Shown here in pieces: positions 2,211 through 43,453 of a stretch of DNA of 64,000 nucleotides. Position 1 is the first letter of the stretch. Each line of letters starts with the position of its first letter. A program made the translations under genes and the position numbers. The notes beneath the pieces were generated by a model, which did not search any database, was not told where the DNA came from, and was given only the letters and a program-made list of their open reading frames with translations. Location of the stretch: the IMG/VR virus record IMGVR_UViG_3300017917_003143, positions 62,001 through 126,000 of that record. One strand, written 5' to 3'.

Positions 2211-2285
2211 TTTGCTCAAAATCGTCAAATAGACGTAGATTTTTGTTGCGTTGCAACATAAATATCATATATAATAATGCAACAC

Positions 2286-2337
2286 CAAGACGCTGGATGG
2301 TCCGGGTCTTGTACCGTAAACTCGCTTAACTAAGGAG
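2286..2337 (+). promoter_or_regulatory. Structured 5' leader with ROSE-like SD-sequestering hairpin
   Basis: CTCGCTT (2321-2327) pairs with AAGGAG (2332-2337) with one bulged G; an upstream caagac/gtcttg hairpin is also present. Confidence 0.55.
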
Positions 2338-2343
2338 AAAAAC

Positions 2344-2619
2344 ATGTTTACATTTGATTCAACAATCGACGCAGTACAAACAGGCAAGAAGCAGTTCGTA
2401 AAGACTTTCGTAACAGACGAAAAGATCGCTGATGCTTTAAACCAATTCATTGACAACCAAACTGAGTACACCAAAAAAGCTGTCAAAGCCACAGTGGACG
2501 CAGGTACCACAGTTGCTCAAGAGTCTATCAAGCACATCCAAGAAGCCGCTAAATTTGATTATACCAAATTTGGTGAAGGCATCATGAAGGCCTACACAGC
2601 GCAAACCAAAACCAAGTAA
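2344..2619 (+). CDS. Small helical protein, phasin-like
   Basis: 91 aa, amphipathic Ala/Lys/Thr-rich helices, strong SD; the phasin call is by resemblance only. Confidence 0.45.
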   Translation: MFTFDSTIDAVQTGKKQFVKTFVTDEKIADALNQFIDNQTEYTKKAVKATVDAGTTVAQESIKHIQEAAKFDYTKFGEGIMKAYTAQTKTK

Positions 2620-2722: not shown

Positions 2723-2845
2723 ATGAAGCACTTGGTTATCGCATTATTCGTGGCCTGTTTGACAGGTTGTGGTACGATTGGAGGCATGGTTTCCGGTGCC
2801 GGTTCCGATCTTTCTAAAGCCGGGGAATGGATCAAATCTAAATGA
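2723..2845 (+). CDS. 40-aa lipoprotein, entericidin EcnA/B-like (missed by the ORF track)
   Basis: MKHLVIALFVACLTGCGTIGGMVSGAGSDLSKAGEWIKSK; SD aggag; lipobox LTGC; ATGA overlap with the next gene. Confidence 0.7.
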   Translation: MKHLVIALFVACLTGCGTIGGMVSGAGSDLSKAGEWIKSK

Positions 2846-3522
2846 AAAAGACAGCACTTTATCTTGCCGTGATCACGACTCTTGGCCTCACTGCCTGTAG
2901 CTCAACCAAGGTCGCAGACGTAGGATCGGGCACCGCAGTCCCTCCTGGCACACAACAAGCCATCTCTGAACAACGTGCGGCTTCTGATTTCAAGCGCGAA
3001 GGTGTGCGTGTGATTTATAGTTTCACTGGCAATCTTGAAGCCGTAGAAGCCGTAGGCTATGCTCCAGTCTGGGGCAACAGCCAGAATGCTGTGCAACAGG
3101 CCTATGAAACTGCCTATGTATTGGCCAAGGATCGCATGAGTTCTTTCTTGCATCCAGAGACTATCACTTCTAAGCGTTTTGTAGATACCATCGCAAAGAA
3201 CTTGGAAAAGGCACGTGACAACAAGACCAACAAGTTTGCTACCAACAAGAACAATGACTTCTCTTTTGAAACCGCGGACACTGAAGCCGCTCGAGAGGGC
3301 GAAGTCAATCGCGAAGAAAACACTGCGGTACGCAACGATGCTGTCAATATCGCATCTAACATCCGTACCACAGTGAGCATCCAACGTTCAGGTATCCTGG
3401 GCGGTGTAGTGCTCAAAGAAGGTCGTGTTATCAACGACGGTAAGAATGTACAGGTGATTGTGCGTTGGGATCGCAAAGACAACAGTCAGCGTCGTGTGAT
3501 CCTTAAAGAAATGATGCAGTGA
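2842..3522 (+). CDS. Lipoprotein (LPP20-like)
   Basis: Signal peptide with lipobox LTAC. Confidence 0.7.
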   Translation: MKKTALYLAVITTLGLTACSSTKVADVGSGTAVPPGTQQAISEQRAASDFKREGVRVIYSFTGNLEAVEAVGYAPVWGNSQNAVQQAYETAYVLAKDRMSSFLHPETITSKRFVDTIAKNLEKARDNKTNKFATNKNNDFSFETADTEAAREGEVNREENTAVRNDAVNIASNIRTTVSIQRSGILGGVVLKEGRVINDGKNVQVIVRWDRKDNSQRRVILKEMMQ

Positions 3523-4619
3523 TGCGGCACCTAGCACTGGCACTGGCTGTGTTGCTTTCGGCCAGTGTGTCAGCGCAGACTGCTGACACTACTGCTATCT
3601 TAAAGCCGAACCCTGTGAGTGTGGTGATCACAGTGGTGCCTTGGTTGCTCAAGGACAGTGAACGCTACTACTTTGTCACTGCCAAGGGCTATGGCCGGAC
3701 CACTGAAGAAGCCAGGACCGAAGCCCTTAGGGCCGCTGTGGATCAGGCAGTGGGATCTGTGGTTAACTCAGAACGTGAAGTAGAAAATCAAAGACTCCGG
3801 CGCAGTGAAGTGGTACAGTATGCCGCGGGCTTTGTAGACCGTTATGAAGTCCGGCGCATCGAACAAGAAAATGGTTTCGTGGCCATGACGGTAGATGTGT
3901 ATGTCAAGCGTAGCCGCCTCACTGACCGGTTGTTGGGAGATCATCGTACTCCAGGCAAGATAGATGGTGAGCGGTTACAAGCGCAAACTGAAACTCTCAA
4001 TCATAGCAGACAACAAGGAGATCGGCTGTTGGGCATGGTCCTGGCTGATTTTCCCCGGCGAGCGTTTGACATCGAGCAAGGCCCCAGCAGAGTTTACTAC
4101 AATGATCAGCGCCAGCGACAGTTGGAACTCAGCTTTAAACTAAAGTGGCGCCATGCTTATTTGGAGAATCTACGCGAAGCCCTGGCCACAGTGAGCCAAA
4201 ATTCCAATGCTGGTGATTGTATTGGGTTATATGCCCGAGCATGCTCCTATCAAGGCTATGTCACGATCAAAGCTCGCCCAGGACAGCACGGGTGGAGCCG
4301 TACTGCGGCGTTTGATGATTCTGTCACCCTAAACATGATACATCAGCATTTGATACAAAGCCGGCCTGCTGTGCTGATCACTATAGATGATCGCCAAGGG
4401 CGCAGGATTTGGCAAGGGTGTCAACGCTGGAGCGAACTGGATAACGAAATGTCAGGGTGGGTACCAAACGAGCGATTGCTACAGCCTACCCGTGATGGGA
4501 TCCAAATAAATGGGTATCTTGCCCTGGATGCCCGGGTACCTTTTAATCTAACAGACTCTACACCGGTGTTAGACACCGTAAAAATGGAGGTTGTCCGCAA
4601 CGCCCAATGCCCGAATTAA
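3519..4619 (+). CDS. Secreted/periplasmic protein with LPP20/FlgT-N-like domain
   Basis: Signal peptide ending ASVSA-Q; motif VTAKGYG..EEAR.EALRAAV.QAVG. Confidence 0.55.
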   Translation: MMRHLALALAVLLSASVSAQTADTTAILKPNPVSVVITVVPWLLKDSERYYFVTAKGYGRTTEEARTEALRAAVDQAVGSVVNSEREVENQRLRRSEVVQYAAGFVDRYEVRRIEQENGFVAMTVDVYVKRSRLTDRLLGDHRTPGKIDGERLQAQTETLNHSRQQGDRLLGMVLADFPRRAFDIEQGPSRVYYNDQRQRQLELSFKLKWRHAYLENLREALATVSQNSNAGDCIGLYARACSYQGYVTIKARPGQHGWSRTAAFDDSVTLNMIHQHLIQSRPAVLITIDDRQGRRIWQGCQRWSELDNEMSGWVPNERLLQPTRDGIQINGYLALDARVPFNLTDSTPVLDTVKMEVVRNAQCPN

Positions 4620-4713
4620 CTGAGCCGATTTTGAATTTGCTCATAAGTAAGTGAGTTGTTCAAAATCTATGTTATAATATACATACTTTACAAACAGCAC
4701 TATTTTCTAGACT

Positions 4714-5295
4714 ATGACTGCGATGATCCAAGAAAAAGACGATCTTACATACTCTCCTGGTGACGATCTTAAAAAGAGTGGCATCTACACATTTATGGGT
4801 GATGTAGACAGTGACAGTATGTTGCCCATCATCGAATGGATCCTACATGAAAACTACATAGTCAAGAAAAAGAAAAAAGAACTCATCCTGATGATTTGCA
4901 GTCGCGGCGGGGATATGGAAGAAGCCTTTGCCTTGATTGACGTGATGAAGAGCAGTAATATACCCATCAAGACTGTGGGCTTGGGGCAGATTGCCAGCTG
5001 TGGATTGTTGATATTCCTAGCAGGTACTCTCGGTCGTAGAGTTCTTACACCCAACACATCTATTTTAAGTCATCAATATTCATGGGGCAGTGATGGCAAG
5101 CATCACGAGCTCTTTGCTATAACCAAAGAGTTTGGTCTAGCCCAACAAAGAATGTTGGATCACTATTGCGAGACCACTGGGCTTGATGAAGAAACAGTCA
5201 AAGCAAAACTATTGCCGGCCAATGATGTATGGCTCAGTGCGCTAGAAGCCAAAGAACTAGGCATCTGCGATCATATCGCACACATCGTGCGTTAA
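4714..5295 (+). CDS. Divergent ClpP-like protease
   Basis: ICSRGG, QIASCG (Ser), LSHQ (His) and NDVWLS (Asp) match the ClpP layout. Confidence 0.8.
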   Translation: MTAMIQEKDDLTYSPGDDLKKSGIYTFMGDVDSDSMLPIIEWILHENYIVKKKKKELILMICSRGGDMEEAFALIDVMKSSNIPIKTVGLGQIASCGLLIFLAGTLGRRVLTPNTSILSHQYSWGSDGKHHELFAITKEFGLAQQRMLDHYCETTGLDEETVKAKLLPANDVWLSALEAKELGICDHIAHIVR

Positions 5296-6854
5296 AAACT
5301 TTTACGGCGTTTACGTCCCAAAGCCTCAGCATCGCCTGGGGCTTTTGCTTTTGTGTCCGCGGCTTTGATAGAACTACGTTGTTGAGCGATCTTGTCTAGC
5401 TTGGCGTCAACAGGTTCTGTTTCTAAACTGTCCACAGGATCCACAGGATTGACGTCTGATGGTTTAGCACCATTCTTCAAAATAGTGAATGTATAGTTGC
5501 CTTTGCCGCCTGTGGAGAAGTAGACTTTGCTGGCATCTAACAGCACACCTGTAACCGCTTCTGATGGATACTTGGCTTCCAGGGCAGTGATAGTAATGGT
5601 ATCGCCGCTGACTCCGGTATAGGTGTACATCTGTACCAAGGCCGCATTGTTCAATATCGATGATGCGGCTTCACCAAAGTTGGTATTTTTGTTGACATAG
5701 TCAGCCACAGGATAAGCGATAGCGGCAATCATGTGTTCAATGGGGATGATCCTACTGGGGTCCTTGCTCTTGCGTCCCTCGTACATTTTTTCAAGTCGCG
5801 GACTCAATAAGCCAGAGCCGATGATCTTGTCATTGGGGCCCATGGACTTGAGTTTCATGACTTGATCAGCTTCTTCGGGCGTGATCATTTTATATTGTAC
5901 AGCCAAAGCCAAGGGAGCACCAAAGTGTCCTTGGCGTTCAATGGTGTTTAGTAATTCGATAGAATCTGCATACTTGTCCAAGAGTTTTTGTCCGGCAGGA
6001 ACTGCTTCTAATTCTTTGACAGATTTTTGCAAGTTGGTCACTGATGCTGAAGCACCGTCTTTGCCTTTGCTGGACAGCTTGATCTGTTTACCATCTGGAT
6101 TGACCAACAAGCTGTCGTAAAGACCGCCAATGGTATTGGTATTGAAACTGATAGTACAATCGCTGTACCCGCCGCCACCAAAGAAAATATCAGCGGCTTC
6201 GTTGGCATTACCTTTGACTTTTTTGCCTAACACCAATGCGATAGGTTGCAGAACTTCAGCAAAGTAATCGCGGAAGGCTTCGGGATTCATGTTACCTCGG
6301 GGTATTTGGCAAGGAATGTCTGACTCGATGAAAATCTGCAGTGCTCGAGTTTCGTCGCTGTCAGGACCAAACTTAGCGATACATTGTTGTAGAATCGTGT
6401 CTGGTGTGTTGTTTTGATACTGTGTGAGCCACTCGCTGGGTTTGAGTCCAGAGTTTTCTTTTTGTCCCACTTTGCTCTGATACTTGAACCCGCCGGGTAT
6501 GGCATCGTGTGGGAAATTGTTCTGTGTGCGATTGGGGCTGATTTCTTTGTAGTATCTCCCCAGATAGTAAGGTGTTTCGTCTTCACCAGTGAAAGTGGCA
6601 ATAGCAAAGGCTCCAGAACCAGCTGTGGGCTGGTTGGTCCAGTGTATGTTTATGCCATTTTTTGCGAGACTTGCAATGGCCGCACTCATTTCATCAGTTG
6701 ATGCATAACGGCCGTTTTCGGGATAGAAATCCAAGCCCTGGAAAGTGATGATGTCATCTACATTATTTTTGAATTTTTCCCCGGGTTTGCGATTGGCCAA
6801 ACCCACACCTTCGTCCAGGGCAGGATATTTGATGATATTTATTAAGTCTCTCAT
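5292..6854 (-). CDS. Probable virion (head) protein, unknown function
   Basis: 520 aa; N-terminus MRDLINII...LDEG resembles a cleavable propeptide; TAAGTA late-like motif upstream on the minus strand (6879-6884). Confidence 0.55.
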   Translation of the reverse strand: MRDLINIIKYPALDEGVGLANRKPGEKFKNNVDDIITFQGLDFYPENGRYASTDEMSAAIASLAKNGINIHWTNQPTAGSGAFAIATFTGEDETPYYLGRYYKEISPNRTQNNFPHDAIPGGFKYQSKVGQKENSGLKPSEWLTQYQNNTPDTILQQCIAKFGPDSDETRALQIFIESDIPCQIPRGNMNPEAFRDYFAEVLQPIALVLGKKVKGNANEAADIFFGGGGYSDCTISFNTNTIGGLYDSLLVNPDGKQIKLSSKGKDGASASVTNLQKSVKELEAVPAGQKLLDKYADSIELLNTIERQGHFGAPLALAVQYKMITPEEADQVMKLKSMGPNDKIIGSGLLSPRLEKMYEGRKSKDPSRIIPIEHMIAAIAYPVADYVNKNTNFGEAASSILNNAALVQMYTYTGVSGDTITITALEAKYPSEAVTGVLLDASKVYFSTGGKGNYTFTILKNGAKPSDVNPVDPVDSLETEPVDAKLDKIAQQRSSIKAADTKAKAPGDAEALGRKRRKSF

Positions 6855-33450: not shown

Positions 33451-36400
33451 ATGACCCAACAAATCATCAACATTGGTGCGACTCCGGATGATGGAGATGG
33501 CGATAATCTACGCACCGCATTTAACAAAGTAAACGAAAATTTTTCCAATGTTTGGGCACAAGGACCCGTTGATTCCAACATCCGTATACAAGGTAATATT
33601 ATTTCTACCTTGCAGGTCAACCAAGATCTTGCACTCAGCCCCAATGGTGTGGGCAATGTACGCTTAAACAACAACACTATTCCTGGCGCAAATAACACAT
33701 GGTTTTTAGGATCAACTACTAATCGCTGGCGCGGTCTTTTCGTAGGCAATGTCACAGCCGGTAATGTGACCATAAATGATGGACTGACAGTACCCGGTGA
33801 TGCCTACATTGGTGGCAATCTTACTGTGGTGGGCAACACCATACAGATTGGTAATATCACCACAGACACCAAAACTATACAGTTGGCCAACACAGCACTG
33901 ACAGACGGTGCTGCCAACGGTGCCGGCATCACAGTAGGTGCTAACGATGACATAGCCACGTTCCTTTACGAGTCTGGTAACAATGTTTGGACCACAAACA
34001 TTGGCCTACAAGTGGGCGGACCAATCACAGGTACCTCCATTGCAGTCAGCGATGCCACAATCTACGGTAATGTAGACGCTGTCAATGGCAACTTTACAGG
34101 CAATGTCACTGCCAACTATTTCATTGGTGATGGTAGCCAACTTACAGGTATTGAAACTGGTGTAACTATATCTAACACAGCACCTGCATTGGGCAATGGT
34201 GGTGTTTGGTGGAACTCAGTGGACGGTCGTGCCTATGTAAAATACAATAGCCAGTTCATTGATCTTAGCCCCAGTTTGATACCAGATCCCACAACTTATG
34301 TAGGCAACGTGGTATTTGACGACTTGACCATAGAGAACGTGGGCAACATCTTGCCTGCTACGACCAATGCTTATAGTTTGGGCAGTGCCGGTTTCCAGTG
34401 GAAAGACCTCTGGGTATCAAACTCCACCATCTACATGAATTCTGTACCTATTGGGTTGACATCGGCTAATGTTCTCACTGTTAATGGCGAACCCATACTG
34501 TCTAACAACAGCACCACTTCGATCACTACCACAGGCAACATCACAGCTGATTACTTGTTTGGCAACGGTAGCCAACTCACTGGACTCAATACCAACCGAA
34601 TACTCAATGGCACTAGCAATGTAGAGATAGCCACCGCCGATGGCAATGTCACGGTCACAGCCAACGGTTCTTCGACTTGGACTTTTGATACCACAGGTAA
34701 CCTGATCACCCCAGCCAATCTGGTGATTGGTCCTTCTCCTGCTGGCGGTTCGAGCATTCTTCAATATGATTCTGCTCTCCAAGTGGTTGGCGAAGGTGCT
34801 AATGCCATAATGGTCATGGGTTGGGCCGCAAATACCAATGCTCCAGACAGTATAGCGGTAGTTGGATTCAATACTCCATATACCAACGGTGCCAGCAATG
34901 TGCTGATCGCAGTGGGCAACAATGCAACCACTGTCAACTACTGGAACTTTGATGACACTGGCAACTTGTCATTGCCTGCCAATGGCATCATCAGTGATAC
35001 AGCCAACGGCATTGGATTAACTGTTGAAAATCCACCAACCACGATAGATATCATTGGTGCAGATTTTGTTGCAGTGAATTTAACTTACACCAGAGACTTA
35101 GGCGAAGCGACTCCAACCTGGATTCCGGCCGGTTATACTCCGGGTGTTGATCCTTACATAGAGTTCAGTGGCGGCGAATATGGAATCTTTGTTCCAGGAT
35201 TCGGCCAAGCACTCTATGTCAACACTGGAACTATCACGGCTCCGTTGGCACAGTGGAATATCAACCCTCCACTGGGCAGTGTTCCGCCCACAGGTGTGTA
35301 TACCTACAGCAATCCTGAGTGGACCTTTGATGCCACCGGTAATCTAACCATACCTGGAACTCTGATTGTTACCACGGGCATTGTTGGATCTGGGGCTAGC
35401 CCAGCACCCAGCATCAACGGTTTCCTAGATGCGTCATTCATTGGTAATGTTACCGCTGACTATTTCATTGGTGATGGATCACAACTCACGGGCCTGCCTG
35501 CAGGATACACCGACTCAGATGTTGCCAACTTGCTGGCTAACTTTGGCAGCAACTCTATCTCAACTACAGGCAACATTGACTCGGGTAATATCAGCACCAC
35601 ATATATCTATGGCGATACCACTGAAGCCAATGTGTTCCAAGGTGGATCAGCCAACATCGCAGGCAACATCATAGCCGGTAACTTCGTAGGGTCTGGAGCC
35701 AACGTAGACATCGTTGCTGGTAGCTATGACTGGACTTTCGTCAATGATGGCAACTTGGTACTGCCCGGCAACACTTTTGCTGTAAAATACGCCAATGGTG
35801 TAGCAGTGAGCTTGGGCGGCAACTACAGTGATTCAAATGTAGTGTCATTGTTGGGTGCTTTTGGTTCTAATACCATAACAACCACGGGTAATATTAGTGC
35901 AGGTTACTTTGTAGGTAACGGCAGTTTGCTCACCGGCGTGGCTAACTCAGCATTTACTACAGTATCAGCCAATGGTACATCATTGGTAGCAGACAGTGCC
36001 TCGGACACAGTGACATTCACTCCGGGCAACAACTTGGTCATAACAGGCACAGCTGGCACAGACACAGTGACTTTTGCTGTAAACGATGCTCCGACATTTA
36101 CCGGCAACGTCACAGCGCAGAACTTTATTGGTAATATCACTATCACAGGCAATGTCACAGGCACCAGTGCCAACGTTGATATTGTAGCTGGCTCTTATCA
36201 GTGGACATTTAATAATGCAGGTAATCTTGTGTTGCCAGGCAACACATTCACAGTAAACTATGCCAATGGTACAGCAGTATCGTTGGGTGGAGGTGGTGGC
36301 GGCACACCTGGTGGGTCTGATACACAAGTACAGTTCAATGACGGTGGCTCGTTTGGAGGAGATTCTGGATTTACATATAACAAGACTACCGATGCCTTGT

Positions 36401-37896
36401 CAGTGACTGGTAACATCACTGGTGCCAACTTGACCACTGCTGGTAATGTTGCATTTACAGCTAACAGTGGTGCTATAGCATTTAACACTGGTGCTTATAT
36501 CAGTGGCAATGGTGCCCCAATCTCTAGAGAAGGCAGTATTGTTCTATCACCTTACACAGGTGCAGGATCTACATTCCCAGGCGTTGTGATTGGCGGTGCT
36601 GGTAGATTGATTGCTCCAAACGGTGGCGTATTCCAGATATTCAATGCGGCAGATGTTACTTTCCAAGTAGCAACTAAAATAACAGCGGGAACGGCCGCAA
36701 CATCAACTACATCAGGTGCATTACAAGTCACAGGCGGCGCTGGTATAACTGGTAATATCTATGCAGGCGGTAACATCAGCGCAGTCGGCAATACCACAAC
36801 AGGTATTGGTGCTGTGGTAGCTGGTCCTACAAATACCTTGCTGGCCAATACTGTGGCAGGATTCACAGGCAACGTCAACAACTATACACAAGTCACGTTC
36901 CAGAATAAGAACACAGGTGCAGACGCCACTGCTGACTTTATCCTTACAGCAGACAACGGCAACGACTCAACCAACTACGGTGACTTTGGGATCATCAACT
37001 CGGGTTATGATCCCAACACACCTACCAACAGCTTGGGTAACATCGTCTACGCCGCAGATACTTACGTCTACGCACAGGGCAATATCTCTAACACCAGCCA
37101 GGCAGGTGGTAACCTTGTGATAGGTGTGACAACACCAACTAAGGCAGTGAAGATCTTTGCGGGCGGTGTTGATAATAACTATCTTGTGGCCAACATCAGC
37201 AACACTGGTGTTGCTGTCACAGGTGCTGTCAGTGCCACAGGCAACGTCACAGGCAACTATTTCTTAGGCAATATCAGCCAAGCCACAGGCGGTTATGGCA
37301 ATGCCAACGTAGTAGCCAACCTGGCTGCCTTGGGCACTAACCCAATCGTTAGCAACGCTAACATCAGTGGTGCTACCTTGTACTCAACCAATGCTTCAGG
37401 CGACGAAGGTGGTGAAATACAACTGACCAAACCGCCCAATGGTACACTTTCGGGCGGTATAACCATTGATGCTTATCAGAATCGATTCAGAGTATTCGAG
37501 CAGGGCGGAACTGCTAGAGGTATGTATATTGATCTTGCTAATAGCCCTGCTGGTGTAGGAGCAGCCATTGGTTACAGAGACATTCCACAGGTAAGTTTGG
37601 CAGCCAATACCACGATCACTACATCAGATGCTGGCAAACACTACTATTCAACATCAGCATCCGCACTCACACTGACCATAGCCAACAACGCCAGCCAAGG
37701 ATTCCAGATTGGTGCTACTCTTAACATCATCAACCAGGGCGCAGGCAACGTGTCAGTGTTGCGTGGCGTGGGCGTTACCATGTATCTTGCAGGTAACTCA
37801 ACATCATCAGATCGTACGCTGACATCATATGGTGTAGCATCCATCACAAAGGTCTCAACAGATACTTGGTTCATCAGCGGTGTGGGGTTGATCTAA
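33451..37896 (+). CDS. Large tail fibre/baseplate-associated protein
   Basis: T4 gp9/gp10-type N-terminus INIG..PDDGDGDNLR.AF.KVNENF; Gly/Asn/Thr-rich repeats. Confidence 0.8.
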   Translation: MTQQIINIGATPDDGDGDNLRTAFNKVNENFSNVWAQGPVDSNIRIQGNIISTLQVNQDLALSPNGVGNVRLNNNTIPGANNTWFLGSTTNRWRGLFVGNVTAGNVTINDGLTVPGDAYIGGNLTVVGNTIQIGNITTDTKTIQLANTALTDGAANGAGITVGANDDIATFLYESGNNVWTTNIGLQVGGPITGTSIAVSDATIYGNVDAVNGNFTGNVTANYFIGDGSQLTGIETGVTISNTAPALGNGGVWWNSVDGRAYVKYNSQFIDLSPSLIPDPTTYVGNVVFDDLTIENVGNILPATTNAYSLGSAGFQWKDLWVSNSTIYMNSVPIGLTSANVLTVNGEPILSNNSTTSITTTGNITADYLFGNGSQLTGLNTNRILNGTSNVEIATADGNVTVTANGSSTWTFDTTGNLITPANLVIGPSPAGGSSILQYDSALQVVGEGANAIMVMGWAANTNAPDSIAVVGFNTPYTNGASNVLIAVGNNATTVNYWNFDDTGNLSLPANGIISDTANGIGLTVENPPTTIDIIGADFVAVNLTYTRDLGEATPTWIPAGYTPGVDPYIEFSGGEYGIFVPGFGQALYVNTGTITAPLAQWNINPPLGSVPPTGVYTYSNPEWTFDATGNLTIPGTLIVTTGIVGSGASPAPSINGFLDASFIGNVTADYFIGDGSQLTGLPAGYTDSDVANLLANFGSNSISTTGNIDSGNISTTYIYGDTTEANVFQGGSANIAGNIIAGNFVGSGANVDIVAGSYDWTFVNDGNLVLPGNTFAVKYANGVAVSLGGNYSDSNVVSLLGAFGSNTITTTGNISAGYFVGNGSLLTGVANSAFTTVSANGTSLVADSASDTVTFTPGNNLVITGTAGTDTVTFAVNDAPTFTGNVTAQNFIGNITITGNVTGTSANVDIVAGSYQWTFNNAGNLVLPGNTFTVNYANGTAVSLGGGGGGTPGGSDTQVQFNDGGSFGGDSGFTYNKTTDALSVTGNITGANLTTAGNVAFTANSGAIAFNTGAYISGNGAPISREGSIVLSPYTGAGSTFPGVVIGGAGRLIAPNGGVFQIFNAADVTFQVATKITAGTAATSTTSGALQVTGGAGITGNIYAGGNISAVGNTTTGIGAVVAGPTNTLLANTVAGFTGNVNNYTQVTFQNKNTGADATADFILTADNGNDSTNYGDFGIINSGYDPNTPTNSLGNIVYAADTYVYAQGNISNTSQAGGNLVIGVTTPTKAVKIFAGGVDNNYLVANISNTGVAVTGAVSATGNVTGNYFLGNISQATGGYGNANVVANLAALGTNPIVSNANISGATLYSTNASGDEGGEIQLTKPPNGTLSGGITIDAYQNRFRVFEQGGTARGMYIDLANSPAGVGAAIGYRDIPQVSLAANTTITTSDAGKHYYSTSASALTLTIANNASQGFQIGATLNIINQGAGNVSVLRGVGVTMYLAGNSTSSDRTLTSYGVASITKVSTDTWFISGVGLI

Positions 37897-37897
37897 C

Positions 37898-38689
37898 ATG
37901 AGTGGTATCTTGATGCCTTACATGTCTGTGTCGGGACAGCAGAGTGTTGTCCTACCCAGCCAGATTCCATCTTTGAACCTATGGTATGACGCCAGTGAAA
38001 GCAACGCGGCTTTTATACAGACCACTGGTGGCGGAGCACCAGCCAACGGCAATCCTGTAAACTCTTGGATTGACAAGCAGGGTGCAGGCCGCAACGCCAA
38101 CCAAACTTCGGGCACACGGCAGCCTTCGTGGCAAGCCAACCAAAAGAACGGCCTGGGCACTATCTTGTTTGATGGTACCAGTGATGTTCTCACGCTGAAC
38201 CCCGTTGGTTCGTGGGCGTTGAGTCTGCCAGGACAGACCACATACATCGTGCTCAAGGCCAATGCTCTCACAGGTATACCTCGGGCCACAATGACCAACA
38301 CCAATGGTTATCAGTTCTTCTGGGATTCTACTTGGGGTATTGAAACAGCAGGTGGCCGTGCCAAAAGCACCTTTGCTGGTGATACTACAAACTACTATTA
38401 CATGGCTCAGATCTTGGACGGCACACAGACCAACGGTGATATCACCGCACAAAACAACGCTCGTCTCAAGATGCGCATCAATGGTGTGCAACAAAGTTTA
38501 ACATTTAGTTCTAACGTTGGCACAGCTACTTCGGGATCGGCCACAGGCTTGTTTGTAGGCGCAGATTCACAACCTGTTACAAATCCCTTCTCAGGGTATA
38601 TTGGTGAGTTATTGATCTGGACCAGGACCTTGAGTCTTTCAGAAATCTTGGCTGTAGAGACGTACCTGTCAGACAAGTGGGGTATATGA
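37898..38689 (+). CDS. Concanavalin/LamG-like tail-associated protein
   Basis: LWYDAS...FDG...GYIGELLIW...VETYLSDKWG. Confidence 0.7.
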   Translation: MSGILMPYMSVSGQQSVVLPSQIPSLNLWYDASESNAAFIQTTGGGAPANGNPVNSWIDKQGAGRNANQTSGTRQPSWQANQKNGLGTILFDGTSDVLTLNPVGSWALSLPGQTTYIVLKANALTGIPRATMTNTNGYQFFWDSTWGIETAGGRAKSTFAGDTTNYYYMAQILDGTQTNGDITAQNNARLKMRINGVQQSLTFSSNVGTATSGSATGLFVGADSQPVTNPFSGYIGELLIWTRTLSLSEILAVETYLSDKWGI

Positions 38690-39411
38690 TGAAGATCCAA
38701 GGTGTAACACTCAAAGGTGTAAAAGTAGTCGATGCTCAAGTTGTAACATCTGGCCTGTCTTACTATATTGACGCTGGAAAAACCACCAGCTATTCAGGAT
38801 CTGGCACGACAGTCAACAACATAGCAGGTACAGCACCTGGCGCCAGTTCCTTGATCAACAGTCCTACATTTACCAACGCTGGTAGCAGTAGTTATTTCAC
38901 TTTCAATGGCAGTAACCAATACGTGTACACTCCAGACTTAATCAGTCAAAGTTTGACTGGCAATGTCACCCTGGAATGTTGGGTCAATACTGCCAGCGAC
39001 AATGGTGTAGTGGTTGTTGAGCAAGGATCTGCTTCACCCAACACATTCTGGTACGACTCTAATATTGAAATAGTCTCAGGAAATCTTGAAGTAGCAATAT
39101 GGCCATATTCACTTGGTTCTGGATTAGTAGTAGGCCCTGTCACTCGCAACACCTGGCAACAATATACCTTGGTCTATTCTGCTGGAACTGCCAGAGGATA
39201 CATCAACGGTGCCACAACAAACTCATATTCAGTCACAAGAAGCTTTGGAGCCAGCGCACTCTATTATGGAATAATGTTGGGAACTCCCACTAGCCTAGGA
39301 GACGGCAGTTATTTGGCTGGTCGCTGGAGCATATTCCGTGTTTATAATCGTGCGCTATCAGCCGCAGAAGTGCTACAGAACTATCGGTCCGACAGTGGGA
39401 GATATCAATGA
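38686..39411 (+). CDS. LamG-like lectin domain protein
   Basis: YIDAG...SYSGSG, YING, YNRALSAAEVLQNY. Confidence 0.8.
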   Translation: MMKIQGVTLKGVKVVDAQVVTSGLSYYIDAGKTTSYSGSGTTVNNIAGTAPGASSLINSPTFTNAGSSSYFTFNGSNQYVYTPDLISQSLTGNVTLECWVNTASDNGVVVVEQGSASPNTFWYDSNIEIVSGNLEVAIWPYSLGSGLVVGPVTRNTWQQYTLVYSAGTARGYINGATTNSYSVTRSFGASALYYGIMLGTPTSLGDGSYLAGRWSIFRVYNRALSAAEVLQNYRSDSGRYQ

Positions 39412-40109
39412 TCATCTCGGGAACAAGATTAACGGGTGGAACTTATAAGACACTGGGCTTGGTCACCAACAGTCTCACAATGTGGCTGGACGCCAACAAT
39501 CCTGCCAGCTACTCTGGATCAGGCACAACCTGGGCAGACTTGTCAGGCAACGGTGCTGATCAGACCCTGTATGGTTCGCCAACCTACATATCAGGCGCAC
39601 CCAGCTTTTTCACCTTCAACGGATTATCCCAATACTCAGTGGGCTCCACACCTTTTGTGTTGCCACCCAACCAGTATACCAAGATGGTGTGGTTCCAGAT
39701 CAATGCGCCGGGAGACAACAACCTTGTGAGTAGCGACACAGGCGGGCACTACATGTATTTTGCCAGCACACCCACACTCTGGGCTGGCAATGCCAACGTT
39801 CCGCCTTATTCTGGCGGAGGTGCATTTGGATCATCTACCAGCTTCGACACAGGTACTTGGTATTGTGCCACAGTGGTGTTCACAGACCCGCAGATATATC
39901 TTTATGTCAATGGTGTGCAGGACGCATTTGATCCTACGTATTCTGTCTCAGGTCACTCAGGAGATGGCTCTGTAAACTTGGCTTGTTTTGGCCCGGGCGG
40001 GAACTTGCTCAACGGCAACATAGCTGAAGTCTATTGCTATGGCCGGGCGCTCACTGCCACAGAAGTGCTACAGAACTACAACGCCACTCGGGGCAGATAC
40101 GGGTTATAA
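39408..40109 (+). CDS. LamG-like lectin domain protein (paralog)
   Basis: LDAN..SYSGSG, LYVNG, YGRALTATEVLQNY. Confidence 0.8.
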   Translation: MIISGTRLTGGTYKTLGLVTNSLTMWLDANNPASYSGSGTTWADLSGNGADQTLYGSPTYISGAPSFFTFNGLSQYSVGSTPFVLPPNQYTKMVWFQINAPGDNNLVSSDTGGHYMYFASTPTLWAGNANVPPYSGGGAFGSSTSFDTGTWYCATVVFTDPQIYLYVNGVQDAFDPTYSVSGHSGDGSVNLACFGPGGNLLNGNIAEVYCYGRALTATEVLQNYNATRGRYGL

Positions 40110-40137
40110 CGGTAAATATGAAATAGGGACTAGAAAA

Positions 40138-40344
40138 ATGAGAATACTAGAAATGCCAGCAAACCCCACTGTAGGGCAGGTTTACATACCCACAAACGAT
40201 GTGATCTACACCTGGACCGGTGATCGCTGGAGTTCAAAAATAGCCATAGAAAACGGCACAGCACAGTATGTTGCCGACAATCAGTTCGCGGATTTTGAGT
40301 ATGATCCCGACTTTGACAACATATTAAACGGAGGCACAGCCTAA
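40138..40344 (+). CDS. Small tail-associated protein
   Basis: PANPTVGQVY...YTWTGDRW. Confidence 0.55.
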   Translation: MRILEMPANPTVGQVYIPTNDVIYTWTGDRWSSKIAIENGTAQYVADNQFADFEYDPDFDNILNGGTA

Positions 40345-43300
40345 ATGTCAACACTAATCAAACTAAGAAGAGATACATCAACTAATTGGACTGCCGCTAA
40401 TCCAGTGTTAGCCTTGGGCGAAGCCGGCATTGTAACCGACACACTGACCTGGAAAGTAGGCGACGGTGTCACTGCCTGGAACGACCTGCCATACATGACC
40501 GGCGGCGAAGGTGGAGGAAACGTATTTTCAGCAATAACAATGACTGCCACACCCAGTGGTGCTTCCGACCAGATCAACTACGGTCTAGGGAACTTGGTTG
40601 CTTATCTTGACGGTGGTTGGACTATTGGCGAATATGATGCAAGCACTGATACATACGGTGCTACAGGTATTCGCATCAATCCCGGCATCGAAGGTTCAGC
40701 TGACATTGTTTTGCCAGCAGATCCAGCCAATGTTCCAGTTCAGATCAACAACTATAGTGGCAATGTTCGAATTCAAACTGGTGAAGGTTTTAACTGGACT
40801 TTTGACAGCGATGGGCAAATCAACATTCCACCTGAATCTAACTCATTTAATGAAGGTCGTATTCAAAGTGCTAACGGTTATCCAACATTGTTAGCATATG
40901 GTTCAAGTGGTGAACACGGTGGTCCTGAATTAGATTGGATGGACAGTGATGATCCTGCTAATGCATTTGGCAATAGCAGTGTTCTACGCAACACAATGTA
41001 TATCAACGACAACGGTCTTTATGTTGGTATCAACGAAAACGGGGTGGCCAACGTGGCCGTGGCAAGTTGGAGACTTGCACCCGATGGTAACTTGGTATTA
41101 CCCGGTGGCGGTGTGATACAAAACCCAGAAAACAGTTCATTGGATCCTGTGTTGGCCAACGTCAGTACCATGGTGCTTACACCCGACGAGAACTACAGCT
41201 CACAGGCCTTGGTGCTAGATCCAACTTCGCCAGGGCATATTCATTTACGTGCTCCAGCCAGCGGCAACATTGACCTACCACTTGCAAATATATTCTTAGG
41301 TGGCGAACAATCAAGTTTTGAAGTGGGCGCCAGCTACGGTGATGTGCCCAATGTGTTTGTCCACAGCGGTGGCAACACCTGGACATTTGGCACCAATGGT
41401 AGCTTGACAGTGCCTGGTACTATCGATGCTAAAACAGTTGGATTCCCATTTACCAGCGCAATCACCAACATCACAACAGGCAATCCAACAGTAATAGTTG
41501 ATATCGCTGACAATCTCTTTGGTGCTCCAGTAACCGGACAAGTAACAATCGTTGGTGTCGTGGGCACCACTGAAGCCAATGATTTTTGGTACTATCAAGC
41601 CGTTGAATCAAATCAATTCCAATTGTTTGTGGATGCTGCCTGCACTGTAGCAGTTGATGGAACCTCATGGACTCCTTATGTCAGCGGCGGTAATGCGTAT
41701 GCTCCTGCATATGATACCCTGGCCTTAAACACTGGTGGTCTTCAAGTCATCGCTGGTCCAAGCTCTTGGTACTTTGGTGTTGATGGCAACATTTCATTGC
41801 CAAGCAACAGCGCCAGCATTAACTACGCCAATGGCGCTCCTTACGGTGGTGGAGGTGGTGGTAACACTGGACAATGGGCTTTCAATAACGACACGGCCTA
41901 TAACTCTACCAACAATGGATTGTATATTCAAGCAAGTCAGGGCACCGACGATGGCGGCGCTTATTTCCCTTATGAGAATGAAGGCTCGACCACAAGACTG
42001 TATAACCTCAGTGGTGCTGGCATTGAACTCAGTGCTGGTGCCAATACCTGGATTTTAAATCCAGATGCCAGCGTCCAGTTTCCACAGATCAACGTAGCAC
42101 GTGGCGATACTTCCAGCGGCAGCGTATACGGCTATACCTTGGTTATTGGCGATGGCGAAAACGAAGCTGTTATAACCACACCCAATGGTGATCCTACAGG
42201 ATTCAACAGCAGCCAACGCTTGGTGATCAATCCAGGTAAAGGTGCTGACGGTACCTCAGGAGAAGGCGGCGACATTTATCTATGGGCCGGTCGTGGCGGT
42301 GACACTGGCGGCTCCGGCGGCGACATCAAGATACGTGGTGGTCAAGGCATGGGCGAAGGCGGTGCTGGTGGTTACATCCGTATGGAAGCCGGCGATGGAG
42401 ATAATGCTGGCGGCGGTTACCCTGGATACATTGAAATCACTGGCGGTCAAGGTGGTAATAGTCAGCCAGGCGGATATGTACGTATTCAAGGTGGCACCGG
42501 CCAAACTGTTGGTGGCGATGCTAATATTACTGGTGGATATGGCAGCAACGGCTCTGGCGGTAACGTTAATATTCTTGGAGGTAGTTCAGGGCTTGGAGCA
42601 GGATCTTACGGCAACGTAAATATCTATACTGGCAACACTGGCAATACTTGGACTTTTGATCAAGCTGGTAACTTGACCGTGCCTGCAAACAGTTTTATTC
42701 AAACAGCACCTGGCAGCGGTGGTGATATTCACATACATCCCGATGATGGTGGGCGATTTGTTGTACGAGGGGCAACCGATACTTTGGTACTCATCACCAG
42801 CGATCTCCCTGATGTAGAAAATAGGATAGAGCTTGATACCTACGGCGCGAATCTTGGATCAGTTGGCGGAGGAGTTTTTGTTGGCCAGTACCTCAGGACA
42901 AATGGTGCGACCCAACTTGATGACCGCCTGGCAAGTTTTGCAGGCAAAGGTACCGAAAACGGGTCCACAGTATCAGGTAATGTGGCCGCAAAAATCACTA
43001 TTGATGCCGCCAACAACTGGGGCATAGGAAATACTCCTACTCATATCAGTTTCTGGACTACTCCAAATGGGACCGATGTGCCTGTGGAACAAGTAAGAAT
43101 TGGGCCTGTTGGCAACCTCATGGTCTACAATGGCAACATCGTGGCTTCCGCCGGCAGAGTTATTTCTCCACTGGCAACAACGGTCAGCAGATTGGTTTCT
43201 GCTTTGCCAGCGGCAGCCAACACAGATCCTGGCACCAGAGCTTTTGTATCTGATGCTGACACTAGAACCTTTGGTAATCTAGTGGTAGGCGGTGCTGGCA

Positions 43301-43347
43301 ATGCTATGCCTGTATGGTCAGACGGTGTAAACTGGTACATAGGCTAA
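40345..43347 (+). CDS. Tail fibre with Mtd_N-like N-terminus
   Basis: IKLRRDT..NW.AANPVLALGEAG...WKVGDG; WTF..DG.L..P repeats; Gly-rich IxIxxGxG block. Confidence 0.8.
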   Translation: MSTLIKLRRDTSTNWTAANPVLALGEAGIVTDTLTWKVGDGVTAWNDLPYMTGGEGGGNVFSAITMTATPSGASDQINYGLGNLVAYLDGGWTIGEYDASTDTYGATGIRINPGIEGSADIVLPADPANVPVQINNYSGNVRIQTGEGFNWTFDSDGQINIPPESNSFNEGRIQSANGYPTLLAYGSSGEHGGPELDWMDSDDPANAFGNSSVLRNTMYINDNGLYVGINENGVANVAVASWRLAPDGNLVLPGGGVIQNPENSSLDPVLANVSTMVLTPDENYSSQALVLDPTSPGHIHLRAPASGNIDLPLANIFLGGEQSSFEVGASYGDVPNVFVHSGGNTWTFGTNGSLTVPGTIDAKTVGFPFTSAITNITTGNPTVIVDIADNLFGAPVTGQVTIVGVVGTTEANDFWYYQAVESNQFQLFVDAACTVAVDGTSWTPYVSGGNAYAPAYDTLALNTGGLQVIAGPSSWYFGVDGNISLPSNSASINYANGAPYGGGGGGNTGQWAFNNDTAYNSTNNGLYIQASQGTDDGGAYFPYENEGSTTRLYNLSGAGIELSAGANTWILNPDASVQFPQINVARGDTSSGSVYGYTLVIGDGENEAVITTPNGDPTGFNSSQRLVINPGKGADGTSGEGGDIYLWAGRGGDTGGSGGDIKIRGGQGMGEGGAGGYIRMEAGDGDNAGGGYPGYIEITGGQGGNSQPGGYVRIQGGTGQTVGGDANITGGYGSNGSGGNVNILGGSSGLGAGSYGNVNIYTGNTGNTWTFDQAGNLTVPANSFIQTAPGSGGDIHIHPDDGGRFVVRGATDTLVLITSDLPDVENRIELDTYGANLGSVGGGVFVGQYLRTNGATQLDDRLASFAGKGTENGSTVSGNVAAKITIDAANNWGIGNTPTHISFWTTPNGTDVPVEQVRIGPVGNLMVYNGNIVASAGRVISPLATTVSRLVSALPAAANTDPGTRAFVSDADTRTFGNLVVGGAGNAMPVWSDGVNWYIG

Positions 43348-43361
43348 GTATTTTGTCCTAA

Positions 43362-43389
43362 TAAAACCCGTACAATGTGCGGGTTTTTT
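43362..43389 (+). terminator. Intrinsic terminator
   Basis: aaaacccgta...tgcgggtttttt. Confidence 0.8.
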
Positions 43390-43453
43390 TATGATCTTGG
43401 CCGAATCGTCATCACAGCAAAAGCCATAAATATCATAAAGCGAGGTATAAACA

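Follow-up and report, generated by a model that had tools for sequence, protein, structure and literature searches.

A probable ROSE-like RNA thermometer leader in front of an orphan gene of a jumbo phage

ROSE-type RNA thermometers are known from the leaders of bacterial heat-shock genes and, more recently, from ABC transporter genes. The classical elements of rhizobia (Rfam ROSE, RF00435) and the E. coli ibpA leader (ROSE_2) have three to four hairpins, whereas the short ROSE-like elements of Pseudomonas ibpA (Krajewski et al. 2013, PMC3669281; Rfam ROSE_3, RF02523) have two, a G+C-rich, temperature-insensitive hairpin I at the 5' end and a short hairpin II in which a U(U/C)GCU motif pairs imperfectly with the Shine-Dalgarno (SD) sequence. 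The IbpA proteins of gammaproteobacteria add a second layer of control, since they repress their own translation by binding the ibpA 5' UTR, which requires Arg93 and Tyr34, and are titrated away by protein aggregates (PMC10474464). At the level of transcription, the PHB-granule regulator PhaR/PhbF represses phaP/phaR promoters, a repression relieved by PHB, and its operator consensus in Herbaspirillum seropedicae, TG[N]TGC[N]3GCAA, was confirmed there by footprinting (PMC3206438); CTGC[N]3GCAG is an alternative form of the operator. Small heat-shock proteins (sHSPs) and phasins are functionally linked in the literature; IbpA/B behave as phasin-like coats of PHB granules (PMC10646324), and a phasin protects E. 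coli against heat shock (PMC4117528). Here we analyse a 64,000-nucleotide window (bases 62001-126000) of a 343,632-bp IMG/VR virus record that is judged 99% complete and is therefore a jumbo phage, of freshwater type; neither near-identical DNA searches with the region nor tblastn searches with the protein found a match to it in the GenBank phage collection. The original prediction from the sequence alone was that a ROSE-like thermometer in this window masks the SD of a 91-amino-acid, amphipathic, phasin-like protein gene that follows a desaturase gene, so that translation of a protein that touches host PHA granules or acts as a chaperone would be gated by temperature.

The leader and its conservation

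The features that had been described are all present in the sequence, and the observation is real. The gene (positions 2344-2619, plus strand, as are the promoter, its palindrome, the hairpins and the terminator below) encodes a 91-amino-acid protein that we call p91, and it follows a fatty-acid desaturase gene (1500-2210; Pfam FA_desaturase, E 4.3e-16) after a 133-nt spacer. The spacer contains a sigma-70-type promoter (2246-2275) with a -35 TTGCGT (2246-2251), an 18-nt spacer and a -10 TATAAT (2270-2275), and transcription is predicted to start near 2282-2283, just before hairpin I (a promoter scan lists the overlapping TTGCAA-16-AATAAT at 2251-2278). Hairpin I (2286-2311) is formed by CAAGAC (2286-2291) with GUCUUG (2306-2311) and by an inner stem of 2293-2297 with 2301-2305, with G2292 bulged, and it is present in the minimum free energy (MFE) structure at every temperature tried. 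In the upper stem of hairpin II (2316-2351) the anti-SD CUCGCUU (2321-2327), separated by the loop AACU (2328-2331), faces the SD AAGGAG (2332-2337) with G2324 unpaired, although RNAfold prefers a register with a 1x1 G/A mismatch. Folding also shows a lower stem that had not been described, in which GUAAA(C) (2316-2321) pairs with (G)UUUAC (2346-2351), so that the base of hairpin II takes in the G of the start codon. An intrinsic terminator hairpin ending in a U run (2654-2698; the fold of 2620-2705 has -26.8 kcal/mol and a z-score of -5.49, and 0 of 200 shuffles are as stable) makes the gene a monocistronic unit.

On the single sequence it is unclear whether this structure is more than chance. 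The MFE z-score is -0.96, and the predicted probability that the SD is unpaired is 0.38 at 15 C and 0.44 at 37 C, which is the 31st-37th percentile of 87 strong-SD leaders of the same genome, so nearest-neighbour folding does not single the leader out. Rfam ROSE_3 aligns over its whole length at 2284-2349, but with 24.9 bits (E 0.0067 for the 651 nt searched) against a gathering score of 43, and it was not listed (limit E 5) when the whole window was scanned; the ROSE and ROSE_2 models gave no hit to the leader. Comparative data settle the matter. The protein has 103 relatives on viral contigs, and in the 80 loci that were retrieved all but three carry the two-hairpin leader (78 of 81 related viral loci), with a TATAAT or TACAAT box 7-9 nt before hairpin I. 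The exceptions are three close orthologues, L026, L034 and L081 (numbered as retrieved loci), which have a short unstructured leader; in addition, L003 has a damaged anti-SD, and more distant p91 homologues lack the leader (L182 keeps the promoter palindrome described below and hairpin I only). ROSE_3 aligned to 4 of 11 related leaders scanned, at 25.8-36.5 bits.

In 60 distinct leaders 92% of cells are paired (92-94% over the covariation analyses, which include the sHSP leaders below), against 31-54% when the partners are slid, and no shuffle of 500 reaches the observed score. Hairpin I is 96.8% paired and has compensatory changes in 8 of 10 pairs, and the anti-SD:SD helix is 93.7% paired; its outer pair is C-G in 51 and U-A in 8 leaders and is never broken, and the variable position of U(U/C)GCU is C-G in 28 and U-G in 27. 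A subgroup with a weaker SD (AAAGGAAAA) has rebuilt the 5' arm as UUUUU-G-UCU, and the rebuilt variants (L069, L057 and L074) still keep a bulged G. These counts were made on alignments fitted to the model, which favours the structure; RNAalifold on a plain MAFFT alignment recovered only the outer stem of hairpin I, and hairpin II required a structure-aware alignment.

The decisive result came from a covariance model, R1, that was built from the p91 leaders alone and run over the whole phage genome, where it found two real sites, this leader (70.8 bits) and genome positions 39352-39424 (44 bits, E 3e-6; L098:2353-2425 in the numbering of that locus). A third hit (17.2 bits, E 1.3, L091:4360-4441) lies before a porin gene, lacks the motif and was rejected. 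The second site lies directly in front of a 146-amino-acid gene (L098:2417-2857) that has an HSP20 domain (E 6.7e-20), is 43% identical to E. coli IbpA over its whole length, and sits between clpX, a ribosomal protein bS21 gene and clpS; p91 itself has no HSP20 domain. ROSE_3 scores this sHSP leader at 29.4 bits, no better than several p91 leaders. R1 also hits 65 of 80 other viral sHSP loci, at or just upstream of the start of the protein match, and ROSE_3 aligns to 11 of 20 of those scanned, one of which (L117, which R1 scores at 36.8 bits) has 43.4 bits and is the only score to reach the gathering score. In the sHSP leaders 9 of 10 pairs of hairpin I show compensatory changes, and the lower stem changes together with the different coding sequence (AGUCA/UGACU in this phage's sHSP copy; GUCAU/AUGAC and CUCA/UGAG also occur). 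The two leaders of this genome share the hairpin I loop and nearly all of hairpin II, but have different, mutually compensated hairpin I stems. The p91 and sHSP genes occur together on at least five other contigs.

The promoter palindrome and the p91 protein

The -35 region of the p91 promoter holds TGTTGCGTTGCAA, an exact match to the PhbF/PhaR operator consensus that is conserved across the family. It is covered by the palindrome TGTTGCGTTGCAACA (2244-2258), of which bases 2244-2256 match TG[N]TGC[N]3GCAA, and the 18-mer has no other intergenic copy in the genome. The exact motif occurs in 26 of 64 unique related upstream regions, at 88-112 nt before the ATG, and a TGC-N3/4-GCA core occurs in 24 more. 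In 62 unique related promoters the half-sites TGTTGC and GCAACAT are 80-90% conserved and the three spacer bases only 30-60%, which is the pattern of a dimer operator. The phage sHSP promoter, on the other hand, is a plain TTGACA-17-TATAAA without the palindrome. The PhaR reading rests on a consensus of nine specified bases from one bacterium, and profile searches (including PF07879 for PhaR) found no PhaR, phasin, PHA synthase or depolymerase gene in the phage, so any such regulator would be the host's; we regard a PhaR-type operator as possible but tentative. A Porin_4 gene elsewhere in the genome, the sigma-70 promoters and the strong SDs point to a proteobacterial host.

The p91 protein (10.2 kDa) is hydrophilic (GRAVY -0.5), rich in T, K and A, and predicted by AlphaFold2 to form three helices (residues 2-22, 26-69 and 73-90; pLDDT 86.9) with hydrophobic moments of 0.37-0.42; it is thus small, helical and amphipathic as phasins are, but this feature is not specific. 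Its C-terminal motif KFDYxKFGEGIMKAY is nearly invariant. The family is large (2326 clusters at 90% identity and 382 representatives at 50% identity), unnamed (none of the names of distant homologues is informative) and essentially confined to viral or metagenomic contigs. A scan of bacterial and archaeal genomes found a single locus, on a contig of a Haliscomenobacter MAG that also carries the leader; we take this to be a phage contig binned with a MAG, and it does not identify a bacterial homologue or a host. No family or fold match passes a threshold: Pfam has no hit to the window protein above cut-off, PHROGs had nothing, NCBIfam (TIGR01841 and TIGR01985 being its phasin models) gave only noise, searches of PDB chains with alignments A2 and A3 of the family returned only designed helical bundles and chance hits, Foldseek against the PDB found nothing at E <= 0.001, and an Atlas shape search gave no hit, although a three-helix model is uninformative for this purpose. 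A tblastn search of plasmids, as a route to annotated phasins, gave two chance hits.

The phasin-like reading has only soft support. Phasin_2 (PF09361) is hit below its cut-off by 8 of 33 close homologues (best E 0.0023) and by 5 of 114 diverse homologues (best E 1.2e-4), and in the diverse set it is the only Pfam family that recurs; there are also a few Perilipin hits among the close homologues. The nearest annotated language-model clusters are Phasin_2, PHB_acc and PHA_synth_III_E, at scores of 0.83-0.86, which count as leads only. We consider a phasin-like identity doubtful on present evidence. Weak Bac_DNA_binding hits in 11 of the 33 close homologues suggested an HU-like protein, but this was rejected because the model is all-helical, and the JGI label "ATP phosphoribosyltransferase" probably reflects a chance HisG hit, seen in 1 of the 33 at E 0.0068. 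A functional link between p91 and the desaturase was also rejected, since the two genes are adjacent in only 10 of 81 loci, whereas a ClpP gene lies within 3 kb in 44.

Interpretation and comparison with described systems

The original interpretation is thus supported in part: the ROSE-like reading of the leader is well supported, the phasin-like reading is not established, and the link to the desaturase is not supported. We think it more likely than not that the 5' UTR of p91 (about 2282-2343, with pairing that reaches 2351) is a short, two-hairpin ROSE-like thermometer of the Pseudomonas ibpA type. In this view hairpin I is a stable 5' stem that, by analogy with the tested Pseudomonas elements, stabilises the RNA, while the weak hairpin II would close the ribosome-binding site in the cold and open on warming; its computed stability falls from -10.4 kcal/mol at 5 C to -7.1 at 20 C and -3.4 at 37 C, and its inner stem is weaker than in the ROSE_3 consensus, which would suit a lower temperature range. 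The p91 copy was most likely derived from the sHSP leader, the two genes would form a small phage-borne translational heat regulon, and the palindrome suggests repression of p91 by a host regulator of PHB-granule proteins; the product may have a phasin-like or holdase-like role. Our analysis demonstrates the sequence features, their conservation and covariation, and the similarity to ROSE_3 and to sHSP leaders, but melting with temperature and heat-induced translation, the transcription start, PhaR binding and repression, and the function of the protein, including any binding to PHA granules, are inferred.

Of the alternatives, the one that survives best, and is nearly as likely as not, concerns the promoter and the protein rather than the leader: the palindrome could be the operator of some other regulator, phage-encoded or of another host family, and p91 could have nothing to do with PHB and be a generic stress protein, a chaperone cofactor or a Clp-linked factor. 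The absence of phaR, phaC, phaZ and Phasin_2 genes from the phage, the sub-threshold Phasin_2 hits, the empty structure searches and the frequent ClpP neighbour favour this, and a second gene-specific palindrome, TAGTGA-N4-TCACTA, in 37 of 65 loci shows that further regulators act here; the exact consensus match with its dimer-like conservation, the recurrence of Phasin_2, the language-model neighbours and the reported link between sHSPs and phasins argue against it. A less likely possibility is that the leader is mainly a protein-binding site, which would place both the phage sHSP gene and p91 under the aggregation-sensing IbpA loop, with or without direct temperature sensing. The phage sHSP aligns with E. 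coli IbpA over its full length and keeps Arg93 and Tyr34 (as R99 and Y40), and the two leaders share the hairpin I loop and nearly all of hairpin II, but Lys98 is not kept (T104) and the mechanism has been shown only in gammaproteobacterial IbpAs; this inferred binding is compatible with the thermometer reading rather than exclusive of it. It is unlikely that the leader is a constitutive structured 5' UTR, in which hairpin I protects the mRNA 5' end (an mRNA-stabilising role for hairpin I is proposed in PMC3669281) and the SD hairpin only damps translation. Predicted stability changes smoothly with temperature and SD accessibility is unremarkable, as this would have it, but the U(U/C)GCU motif with its bulged G is kept across 57-91% protein identity, through a compensatory C-G to U-A change and a rebuilt variant, and the same element precedes sHSP genes, the canonical thermometer context. 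Chance resemblance of a strong SD preceded by a pyrimidine-rich stretch, to which the sub-threshold Rfam score and the z-score might point, is excluded by the covariation and by the hits to sHSP leaders, with only two sites in 343 kb, of a model that never saw them.

An unlikely extension is that jumbo phages of this clade copied the leader of their captured ibpA gene onto a phage-only, phasin-like granule or aggregate coat protein and placed it behind a host PhaR operator; the phage would then read PHB-granule load through PhaR, temperature through the ROSE hairpin and protein aggregation through IbpA, a virus-borne post-transcriptional heat/aggregation regulon. More generally, we found no report of a ROSE-like element in a phage in the literature that could be searched, and the recruitment of this one to a second gene in many environmental jumbo-phage contigs suggests that some phages tune translation of their own proteostasis genes to water temperature. 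The leaders also provide a short (about 70 nt), naturally varied set of sequences for testing how ROSE hairpins are tuned to lower temperature ranges, and the regulatory signals give a handle on the function of an abundant orphan phage protein and on the host, probably a PHB-accumulating proteobacterium.

Compared with phasins, p91 is likewise small, predicted all-helical, amphipathic and hydrophilic with weak recurrent profile hits, but none is above cut-off, and its invariant C-terminal motif is not known to be a phasin feature. Like the promoters repressed by PhaR/PhbF, the p91 promoter is overlapped by the operator motif and precedes a gene for a small helical protein, but the gene is on a phage, and binding of PhaR is inferred from sequence alone. 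Another group of bacterial elements is a precedent for the UUGCU motif controlling genes that are not heat-shock genes; they precede different cargo, and the paper that describes them does not mention phages. The classical ROSE elements share the anti-SD motif with a bulged G, and, as in ROSE1, the SD and the start codon lie in the same terminal hairpin, but they have more hairpins. The closest relationship is with the short Pseudomonas elements, which have the same two-hairpin architecture and motif; the hairpin I core GAUGCCG...CGGGUC of the Rfam consensus recurs almost letter for letter in several phage leaders, and the sister copy precedes an IbpA-like gene. The p91 leader differs from them in being carried by a phage in front of a non-sHSP, phage-only gene, in its score below the Rfam cut-off, in the weaker inner part of hairpin II (C-G, U-A, U-A, against four pairs in the consensus), in an added lower stem that reaches the start codon, which is unpaired in the Pseudomonas elements, and in its combination with a sigma-70-type promoter that carries a PhaR-like operator.

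Proteostasis genes, the p91 neighbourhood and the porin gene

Outside the window, at genome positions 37697-40233 (697-3233 of L098, a segment of the same phage genome), there is a proteostasis island that consists of clpX (399 aa), a gene for ribosomal protein bS21 (70 aa), a 72-aa ORF, an IbpA-like HSP20 gene with its own ROSE-like leader (L098:2353-2425), and clpS. In addition, window positions 4714-5295 (+) contain a ClpP-family protease gene (Pfam CLP_protease, E 3.7e-27), which PHROGs labels as head maturation protease; together with the clpX and clpS genes elsewhere, the phage may encode a full ClpXP/ClpS set. This gene lies within 3 kb of the gene for p91 (the 91-aa protein) in 44 of 81 related loci. 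Directly downstream of p91 lie genes for a 40-aa entericidin-like lipoprotein (2723-2845; the Pfam hit is weak), a 226-aa lipoprotein (2842-3522) and a 366-aa protein with a signal peptide (3519-4619), all on the + strand, and these are conserved as a block in about 20 of the 81 loci. The phage also encodes a Gram-negative porin (Pfam Porin_4, E 6e-37) outside the window at genome positions 209433-210620 (4433-5620 of the genome segment L091), which hints at a proteobacterial, possibly betaproteobacterial, host.

Homologues of p91 and orthologues without the leader

The only hit for p91 in the bacterial genome collection is on a 69,978-bp contig of a Haliscomenobacter MAG (NZ_JBBAKG010000031.1). 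This contig also carries the leader (61.3 bits with R1, the covariance model built from p91 leaders alone), and it is probably a phage contig that was binned into the MAG. Many JGI records name p91 homologues "ATP phosphoribosyltransferase"; this fits only a chance HisG hit (1 of 33 members, E 0.0068) and looks like a propagated misannotation. Three p91 orthologues, those of the related viral loci L026, L034 and L081, lack both hairpins in the region upstream of position 3001. L026 and L034 keep a GTTGCACTGCAGCA-type promoter box followed by a short U-rich leader, and L081 has a related GCGTTGCAGCA box. These three are natural "no thermometer" controls.

Other palindromes and a weak leader match

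A near-perfect palindrome, TGTTGCCAGGCAACACA, at window positions 36230-36247 also fits the PhbF/PhaR operator consensus TG[N]TGC[N]3GCAA on both strands, but it lies inside a coding region (the 1481-aa ORF at 33451-37896) and may be chance. Weak Rfam Leu_leader matches were found on both strands at window positions 43297-43423 (28.8 and 26.5 bits, cut-off 50), between the 1000-aa and 953-aa ORFs; this is most likely a bidirectional terminator hairpin and not an attenuator. A second conserved palindrome, TTAGTGA-N4-TCACTAA, is absent from the window but is present 116-134 nt upstream of the p91 ATG in related loci (for example L010, L018 and L027), where it is centred near -63 of the promoter. 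It occurs in 37 of 65 unique p91 loci and in none of 60 sHSP loci, and its layout, in our reading only, recalls a CRP/FNR-type class I site.
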